64,000 nt of DNA from Octopus sinensis (lineage: Eukaryota), in contig NC_043019.1 in the NCBI RefSeq assembly GCF_006345805.1, positions 3,906,001 through 3,970,000 on the forward strand. Reading direction: 5' to 3'. Both the position numbers and the translations under genes were made by a program. Shown piece by piece: positions 28,382-52,610 of the stretch (positions are counted from its first letter, which is position 1; every line of letters starts with the position of its first letter). The notes below the pieces were generated by a model. That model saw only the letters and a program-made list of their open reading frames with translations, was not told the DNA's origin and made no database searches.

Positions 28382-28702
28382 TTATTCTACAATCTTTAAT
28401 CGTTGTTGAATATCGATTTCATATAAATTAGATCTCAGTCCGCAAAGTTTATGAATATAATTCTCTCGAGAACAATTAAAATAACGAATGAAACTCTTGC
28501 AATGAGGACAAAGAACAGGGATTGAGTCCATGAGGAGTCCAGCCCGTTCTTCATTTTGGTTGAGTTTATCTACCAGGTGTATTTTCAAGGACTGGTACTT
28601 GGCAATAGCATCGGAATATCGTAGCTTCTGTTTCTCATGTACACTTCGTTTCAATAGTTGTCTTATTTCGTTCAAAAGATTCTCCAAATGAATCAGCTGG
28701 TT
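28382..28702 (-). CDS. Copy B terminal exon ([15 protein letters not shown]...[26 protein letters not shown]...IVE*)
   Basis: tttttatttctag| acceptor in phase 0, open to TAA at 28382-28384 (ORF 28382..28687). Confidence 0.65.
   Translation of the reverse strand, partial: NQLIHLENLLNEIRQLLKRSVHEKQKLRYSDAIAKYQSLKIHLVDKLNQNEERAGLLMDSIPVLCPHCKSFIRYFNCSRENYIHKLCGLRSNLYEIDIQQRLKIVE

Positions 28703-52610: not shown

Follow-up and report, generated by a model that had tools for sequence, protein, structure and literature searches.

The DNA analysed here raises the question of whether a working gene for an NLR-like receptor lies hidden among its repeats. The window, that is the whole stretch of 64,000 nucleotides, corresponds to Octopus sinensis scaffold C23:3906001-3970000 in a genome of 2.72 Gb and is located at the edge of a cluster of about 0.4 Mb; the initial annotation, which had been made from the letters alone, had correctly described the genome as cephalopod-like. 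It had also proposed an intact gene of nine exons, chained through GT-AG sites in phase into a product of about 820 aa, with a STAND NTPase followed by TPR-like units.

Exons of the window copy and the gene cluster

All nine proposed exons of this gene copy (the window copy) were recovered at their coordinates on the minus strand, and the internal boundaries are flanked by AG upstream and GT downstream. The exons, coordinates and splice sites thus stand, but the reading phase does not: the nine exons together are 2461 nt long, one more than a multiple of 3, and the joined translation stops at codon 165. In a frame-by-frame translation, exon 2 starts in frame 0 but continues in frame 2 after about 260 nt, and joining exon 7 to exon 8 in phase requires a shift of 1 nt. 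The figure of about 820 aa silently presupposes two frame repairs.

All exons were aligned across five paralog loci taken from the genome. Exon by exon, the window copy shows 72-99% nucleotide identity to the five other gene copies with identical splice sites, and its exons also match annotated octopod proteins; the exon set is therefore far beyond chance. The family gene consists of 10 coding exons with identical AG/GT boundaries among copies, one more than had been counted, as exon 5b between the fifth and sixth of the proposed exons had been overlooked. The features in the window are as follows.

52431-52610, minus strand: coding exon 1, 60 codons with ATG start, FVGR and Walker A (GLPYVGKTS); intact; exon 1 of the paralogs is 96-99% identical
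50031-51055, minus strand: coding exon 2, 1025 nt (1026 nt in 9 of 9 compared paralog copies), with Walker B, GLPG, a winged helix whose MHD position reads VQE, and the first helical repeats; frameshifted
45925-46081, minus strand: coding exon 3, 157 nt; intact; 100% to residues 403-455 of the O. vulgaris model P0001
39160-39307, minus strand: coding exon 4, 148 nt, TPR; intact; sub-threshold TPR_1, TPR_2 and TPR_12 matches
38012-38121, minus strand: coding exon 5, 110 nt, TPR; intact
36269-36385, minus strand: coding exon 5b, 114 nt and phase 1-1 in paralogs; degraded in the window copy
35659-35802, minus strand: coding exon 6, 144 nt, phase 1-1, TPR; intact
34775-34885, minus strand: coding exon 7, 111 nt (112 nt in 5 compared paralog copies); frameshifted
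32392-32656, minus strand: coding exon 8, 265 nt, TPR_12-like (24.2 bits); the most divergent exon among paralogs; intact
28382-28702, minus strand: coding exon 9, 321 nt with the stop codon counted, encoding the helical C-terminal tail and its conserved CxxC; intact
626-4492, minus strand: copy B, the 5' part of a second gene copy, with exon 1 at 4313-4492, exon 2 at 1971-3032 and exon 3 at 626-782

Taken singly, the window exons gave sub-threshold Pfam matches only (NB-ARC 13.4 bits); exon 1 alone weakly matched ATPase_2, AAA_16 and NB-ARC. Exons 5b and 6 are each of phase 1-1 and exons 4 and 5 are jointly so, and skipping preserves the frame. Because these phase-1 cassettes skip in frame, a model without exon 5b looks coherent, as does the O. 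vulgaris model P0001, from which exons 4 and 5 are missing.

The copy is surrounded by repeats. About 250 bp 3' of its stop codon lies an LTR retrotransposon (window 22788-28130, minus strand) with direct repeats at 22788-23087 and 27618-27917 that are 93% identical, and with ORFs, split over several frames, for DUF7041 (gag-like), a retroviral protease, RVT_1, RT_RNaseH and an integrase. Intron 3 harbors a plus-strand open frame of 466 aa (41718-43523) with a weak RVT_1 match (23 bits), probably a decayed non-LTR element, which is followed by a very C-rich low-complexity tract with a GC skew of -0.63. Intronic microsatellites beside exons include (AAG)60 at 36402-36589, (CCTA)68 at 51825-52098, (ATC)45 at 38144-38279 and (TA)73 at 33630-33774. 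The (AAG)n/(CTT)n array adjoins the degraded exon 5b, and in paralogs it also serves as the polypyrimidine tract of this exon. Neither Rfam nor tRNA scanning found anything in the window.

The family spans about 3.886-4.30 Mb of C23 plus unplaced contigs. A six-frame search of the genome with the exon 2 frame identified at least 14 close copies (82-100% amino-acid identity), 10 of the 14 on C23 at 3.908-4.300 Mb and the other four on the unplaced contigs C2724 (two), C476 and C766; two further, divergent loci were found on C26 and C12701. Exon 2 is broken in four of the 14 (the window copy, copy B and the copies at 4.014 and 4.170 Mb), and three copies of the cluster besides the window copy have stops in this exon. 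Complete uninterrupted copies exist as well, namely C2724_a and the C23 copy at 4.12 Mb, with ORFs of 858 and 857 aa, respectively, and the 4.045-Mb copy is open across exons 2-9. The gene type can hardly be called hidden, as had been claimed, since RefSeq already contains models of intact paralogs, at distances of 24-340 kb, under the name "uncharacterized protein LOC..."; LOC115223560, LOC115223561 and LOC118767588 are among the intact paralogs.

Exon 2 of copy B contains an in-frame TAG and 42 gap columns, and the remainder of the copy lies to the left of the window. It continues to C23:3886273, the left edge of the cluster, with the block of exons 4-7 present twice and a 100-N scaffold gap inside; copy B is either a rearranged pseudogene or a mis-join. 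Elsewhere in the cluster, the regions at 3977-4007 kb (plus strand, copy at 3.98 Mb) and 4122-4149 kb (minus strand, copy at 4.145 Mb) of C23 lie in opposite orientation about 165 kb apart with coding sequences that are 99.57% identical, which indicates a recent inverted segmental duplication. In both of these copies the last exon is doubled, about 560 bp apart, and the best-matching exon 9 of the 3.98-Mb copy has stops.

Among intact paralogs, dN/dS was 0.32-0.56 overall and below 1 in every region, the TPRs included; the intact paralogs are therefore under purifying selection and functional. No signal of diversifying selection was detected in their TPR exons. For one and the same pair of copies, dS was 0.03-0.09 in the exons of the nucleotide-binding oligomerisation domain (NOD) and about 1.1 in TPR exons 6-7, a mosaic that suggests gene conversion homogenising the 5' half.

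NOD and TPR arm of the intact paralogs

The intact family members of 857-858 aa comprise an unstructured N-terminus of about 20 aa, a NOD at about residues 20-335, a TPR solenoid and a helical C-terminal tail. The order of motifs was as originally described, with FVGR, Walker A (GLPYVGKTS), Walker B (IFDDF), GLPG and VQE at the MHD position. Throughout the family alignment Walker A (exon 1) and Walker B (ICIFDDF, exon 2) are conserved, and the proline of the GxP motif CGLPGLL is invariant in alignments of 15 and 19 sequences. Three positions deviate from the canonical pattern. The octopod proteins have GLPG where canonical NB-ARC domains have GLPL. At the MHD position the histidine is replaced by glutamine (F-x-VQE/VQQ, aligned to IHD, IHG or MHS in bivalve and hemichordate relatives), and the sensor-I arginine (RNBS-B "TT/SR") is replaced by a serine (ILSGG), which in the sequence alignment stands opposite the TSR arginine of P0030. 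The ADP-locked off state is considered to depend centrally on the sensor-I Arg and the MHD His. Judged from the alignment, the two replacements would make normal ATP hydrolysis and ADP latching uncertain.

With the Pfam NB-ARC model (PF00931), cephalopod members scored 15.9-23.0 bits, under the gathering score of 23.5 bits, whereas distant molluscan relatives exceeded this cut-off (31.4-43.8 bits). Because their NTPase domain falls under the threshold, the octopod proteins are labelled only as "uncharacterized" or "TPR region-containing". A family profile that included the molluscan relatives matched AfsR (5.7e-15), NRC1 (3.1e-11) and many plant NLR NB-ARC domains among PDB sequences. The cephalopod-only profile barely detected an NB-ARC structure (E = 0.0066 only); the class of the NOD could therefore not be assigned from sequence alone, and a fold search was needed.

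AlphaFold2 models were generated for the full-length intact O. sinensis paralog P0014 (pLDDT 84.7, pTM 0.73) and for the NOD of P0026 (pLDDT 84.7, pTM 0.80). In Foldseek searches, the best match to the full-length model was the archaeal STAND-TPR protein PH0952 (6mfv, E 4e-10). For the NOD alone, the top 50 matches were dominated by NRC1-4, CED-4, ZAR1, Apaf-1, WRR4A, Roq1, Sr35 and MalT, with the wheat G10 resistosome protein (9h2l) also among them; the remainder were non-STAND AAA+ ATPases (ORC, RuvB and an archaeal Walker-type ATPase). Profile and fold evidence thus support residues 1 to about 335 as a predicted NB-ARC-type STAND NOD composed of a P-loop NBD, a helical domain and a winged helix. 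The proposed STAND/NB-ARC NTPase plus TPR architecture is borne out in the family profile, the AlphaFold2 models and the Foldseek searches alike, and the profile and structure searches did not assign the NTPase to a non-STAND family.

No NACHT protein was present in the Foldseek top 50, and no cephalopod member had a Pfam NACHT match at E ≤ 0.01. No Pfam LRR family was matched in family members either, the repeats being TPRs. With both features absent from models and profile matches, the family would not qualify as a bona fide animal NLR (NACHT plus LRR). In a six-frame Pfam scan of the whole genome, in which exons were scanned singly and counts are lower bounds, 0 NB-ARC and 2 NACHT matches (C17:23658676 and C19:28239681) were obtained; canonical NOD genes therefore look scarce in O. 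sinensis.

The residues after the NOD are predicted to form a TPR solenoid of the kinesin light chain type with about 9-10 hairpins. In P0014, TPR_12 reached 63.7 bits (cut-off 30.1), and KLC1/2 were matched at 1e-27 with the profile containing molluscan relatives and at 1e-16 with the cephalopod-only profile. The earlier count of 5-6 TPR-like units was too low, as the AlphaFold2 model of the intact paralog shows 19 helices in about 9-10 hairpins between residues 395 and 800. No effector domain was found: the NOD is preceded by about 20 low-confidence residues (pLDDT 38-48), and no Pfam domain was matched outside the NOD and the TPRs. In the C-terminal tail, the alignment revealed a CxxC whose conservation extends to distant cephalopod relatives.

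Relatives and possible function of the family

A search with the exon 2 frame against 1.84 billion representative proteins returned 13 matches only, the closest an O. vulgaris protein (94% identity) and the most distant bivalve and hemichordate proteins that are annotated as, or score as, NB-ARC. Close relatives were found in O. sinensis, O. vulgaris, O. bimaculoides and Argonauta hians, where every one of them bears the name "uncharacterized protein" or "MalT-like TPR region domain-containing". The family is octopod-restricted and tandemly amplified. Searching for a spread beyond octopods with the divergent 1195-aa relative P0005 gave only unnamed transcript assemblies. A transcript-sized Logan contig of SRR29271463 (2882 nt) encodes an uninterrupted homolog of 845 aa that is 35-39% identical, which indicates that a divergent family member is expressed and spliced in some cephalopod sample.

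Bivalve NB-ARC-TPR proteins (Saccostrea echinata LOC133184984, Pinctada imbricata KAK3097977 and Potamilus streckersoni KAK3596952) have the same architecture. They share FxGR, P-loop, Walker B, GLP motif, winged helix and TPR_12-type repeats with the octopod family, align to it over the full length (20-21% identity) and likewise lack the sensor-I arginine; phmmer with exon 2 of the window copy alone reached them at E 2e-7 to 9e-6. The bivalve proteins pass the Pfam NB-ARC cut-off (31-44 bits) and keep the MHD histidine (IHD/IHG), whereas the octopod proteins stay below it, carry VQE, have GLPG instead of GLPL and form a tight clade of their own.

Apaf-1 and CED-4 were among the best fold matches of the NOD; they combined the lowest rmsd with the highest TM-scores and have the same NBD-HD1-WHD order (CED-4: target-normalised TM 0.60-0.62, rmsd 4.1-5.1 Å over about 350-377 columns, with rmsd reaching 6 Å among the top 50 matches to the NOD alone; Apaf-1 apoptosome: query-normalised TM 0.52). 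In contrast to these single conserved genes, the octopod family is multi-copy and lineage-specific, has no N-terminal CARD and carries TPRs instead of WD40 repeats; sequence identity is 12-15%. The NB-ARC domains of plant NLRs (NRC1-4, ZAR1, Roq1 and Sr35) were top Foldseek and profile matches to the octopod NOD, and plant NLRs resemble the family also in their tandem clusters, pseudogenes and gene-conversion-like mosaicism. Unlike plant NLRs, the octopod proteins have TPRs in place of LRRs and neither CC nor TIR, their RNBS-B arginine and MHD histidine are replaced, and a signal of diversifying selection is absent. In prokaryotic STAND-TPR proteins (Pyrococcus PH0952 6mfv, MalT and AfsR) and in the antiphage Avs proteins of bacteria, the NOD is followed by a TPR sensor arm as in octopods. 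AfsR was the best NOD sequence match of the family profile (6e-15), and MalT and Avs3 also appeared. These prokaryotic proteins carry DNA-binding or nuclease/protease effectors, which the octopod family lacks, and the overall TM-score between them and the octopod model is low (0.14-0.38) because the domain arrangement differs.

Invertebrate genes with a NOD (NB-ARC or NACHT) and TPR or WD40 repeats instead of LRRs, often clustered, have been described in Hydra, placozoans and corals (PMC6321704, PMC3879445). Compared by description only, these NLR-like genes differ from the octopod family in that they usually have CARD, Death-like or DED N-termini. In the literature searched, no paper linking NB-ARC, TPR and octopus was found; the texts on cephalopod immunity that were consulted contain no mention of such genes, and searches on cephalopod NLRs gave no relevant statement.

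If Apaf-1/CED-4, plant NLRs, MalT/AfsR and PH0952 are taken as a guide, the intact proteins may act as nucleotide-gated switches. The TPR arm would keep the NOD closed until a ligand binds; ligand binding would relieve this autoinhibition, and nucleotide exchange could then permit oligomerisation. Because an effector domain is absent, output would be expected through a recruited partner or the C-terminal tail. A role as immune or defence sensors is plausible for the intact paralogs by analogy of architecture and birth-and-death dynamics, and the copy-number turnover, frequent pseudogenes and gene-conversion-like mosaicism of the cluster plausibly fit such a role. An N- or C-terminal effector or signalling domain, as in sensors of the Avs or fungal NLR type, was not found.

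This last feature bears on another account, in which the family would be a STAND-TPR scaffold or regulator with housekeeping or developmental tasks and not an immune sensor, comparable to Nephrocystin-3, to adaptors of the kinesin light chain type or to an Apaf-1-like death regulator. No CARD, Death, TIR or other effector precedes the NOD in the roughly 20 residues available, dN/dS is below 1 in all regions including the TPRs, the TPRs are most like those of kinesin light chain, and faint Pfam NPHP3_N and TPR_NPHP3 matches occur among relatives; moreover, the literature notes that a role as pattern receptors is not established for the TPR- or WD40-bearing NOD proteins of early animals (PMC6321704). 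This account is nevertheless somewhat unlikely given the lineage restriction (13 representatives in 1.84 billion clusters, the close ones octopod only) and the history of the cluster, with at least 14 copies and high turnover, several of the copies being pseudogenes, together with an inverted duplication of recent date and a mosaic dS. A housekeeping scaffold would not usually show such a history, whereas genes of defence or conflict usually do.

Lesions of the window copy and significance of the family

The window copy itself lacks an uninterrupted frame with usable splice sites across all coding exons. Contrary to the notion of an intact gene, frame-breaking lesions are present in three of its ten exons, and as assembled it is unable to encode an intact family protein. 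In exon 2, one A of TTAAGT is absent after 50796 (codon 147) that is present in 9 of 9 compared paralog copies. This deletion shifts the frame, leads to the stop at codon 165 and truncates the product just after Walker B. In exon 7, one base is absent after 34790, which shifts the frame and brings up a TGA immediately ahead of the donor. The acceptor AG of exon 5b is lost beside an expanded, degenerate (CTT)n tract, with 8 extra bases there, a TAT is changed to TAA near 36372, and four deletions follow after 36352, 36332 (2 nt), 36322 and 36313.

Over its 2.58 kb of exons, the window copy thus carries six deletion events that are private to it, in addition to the insertion of 8 nt at the exon 5b acceptor. 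Private indels were not found in the other two complete 10-exon copies compared, and C23_4122k shows one in-frame codon deletion; pairwise comparison of paralog introns gave about 5-17 gap openings per kb. Measured against the intact copies and the intron rate, the exons of the window copy therefore behave like neutral, unconstrained sequence. It is quite probably a young pseudogene, one of several in the cluster.

An unlikely alternative is that the window copy is a working gene whose frame breaks are errors of assembly or polishing, in a long-read assembly of a recently duplicated region rich in microsatellites. The private indels in coding sequence are indeed all deletions, each removing 1-2 nt, and short homopolymers account for the position of three; the lesions of exon 5b cluster beside a (CTT)n tract of about 190 nt, in a stretch of 343 bp with 23 gap openings relative to the paralogs, where long-read consensus is weakest. 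Seven of the ten exons are fully open, among them exon 1 and both UTR-proximal ends, and the ratio of synonymous to nonsynonymous private substitutions (5:13) is no different from that of intact copies (8:18 and 11:22). Against this, the same assembly yields clean frames in two other complete 10-exon copies and in 9 of 9 compared exon 2 copies. The lesions also include a nonsense substitution (TAT to TAA), the loss of an acceptor AG and some deletions that do not lie in homopolymers; polishing does not typically produce such errors, and real decay is therefore favoured. Stops of the substitution type in other cluster copies show that decay is common in this cluster, and local tblastn found no exact match to the window copy among the annotated proteins compared.

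A further reading, in which no gene is present and the open frames and GT-AG sites of the exons arose by chance in repeats, as their shortness, their position amid microsatellites and transposon remnants and their sub-threshold single Pfam matches might suggest, was rejected and has practically no probability, since all ten exons, identically ordered and bounded, are found again at five or more further loci, two complete copies assemble into uninterrupted ORFs of 857-858 aa, RefSeq proteins from four octopod species match and a homolog is uninterrupted on a 2.9-kb assembled contig of the public run SRR29271463. Taken as a whole, the data are fairly likely to be best explained by a broken member of a tandem octopod family, the intact members of which are switches with an NB-ARC-type NOD and TPRs.

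The window locus itself has very little significance, being one decayed copy amid annotated intact neighbours. The architecture of TPRs joined to a NOD is already known; what is cryptic is the NB-ARC-like NOD in an octopod tandem cluster. For cephalopod immunology the family provides concrete, testable candidate intracellular sensors, and it represents a natural case of a NOD without two residues that are held to be central to the ADP-locked off state. A bolder proposal, which we regard as decidedly unlikely, is that this effector-less, highly diverged NB-ARC-TPR family, unrecognised by standard domain models, is the main expanded family of NOD-type intracellular sensors in octopods. If so, a lineage-specific repertoire of immune receptors would have escaped those cephalopod surveys in which NLR-like genes were reported as few or absent, and octopods would possess receptors that signal by some route other than a death-fold or TIR domain.
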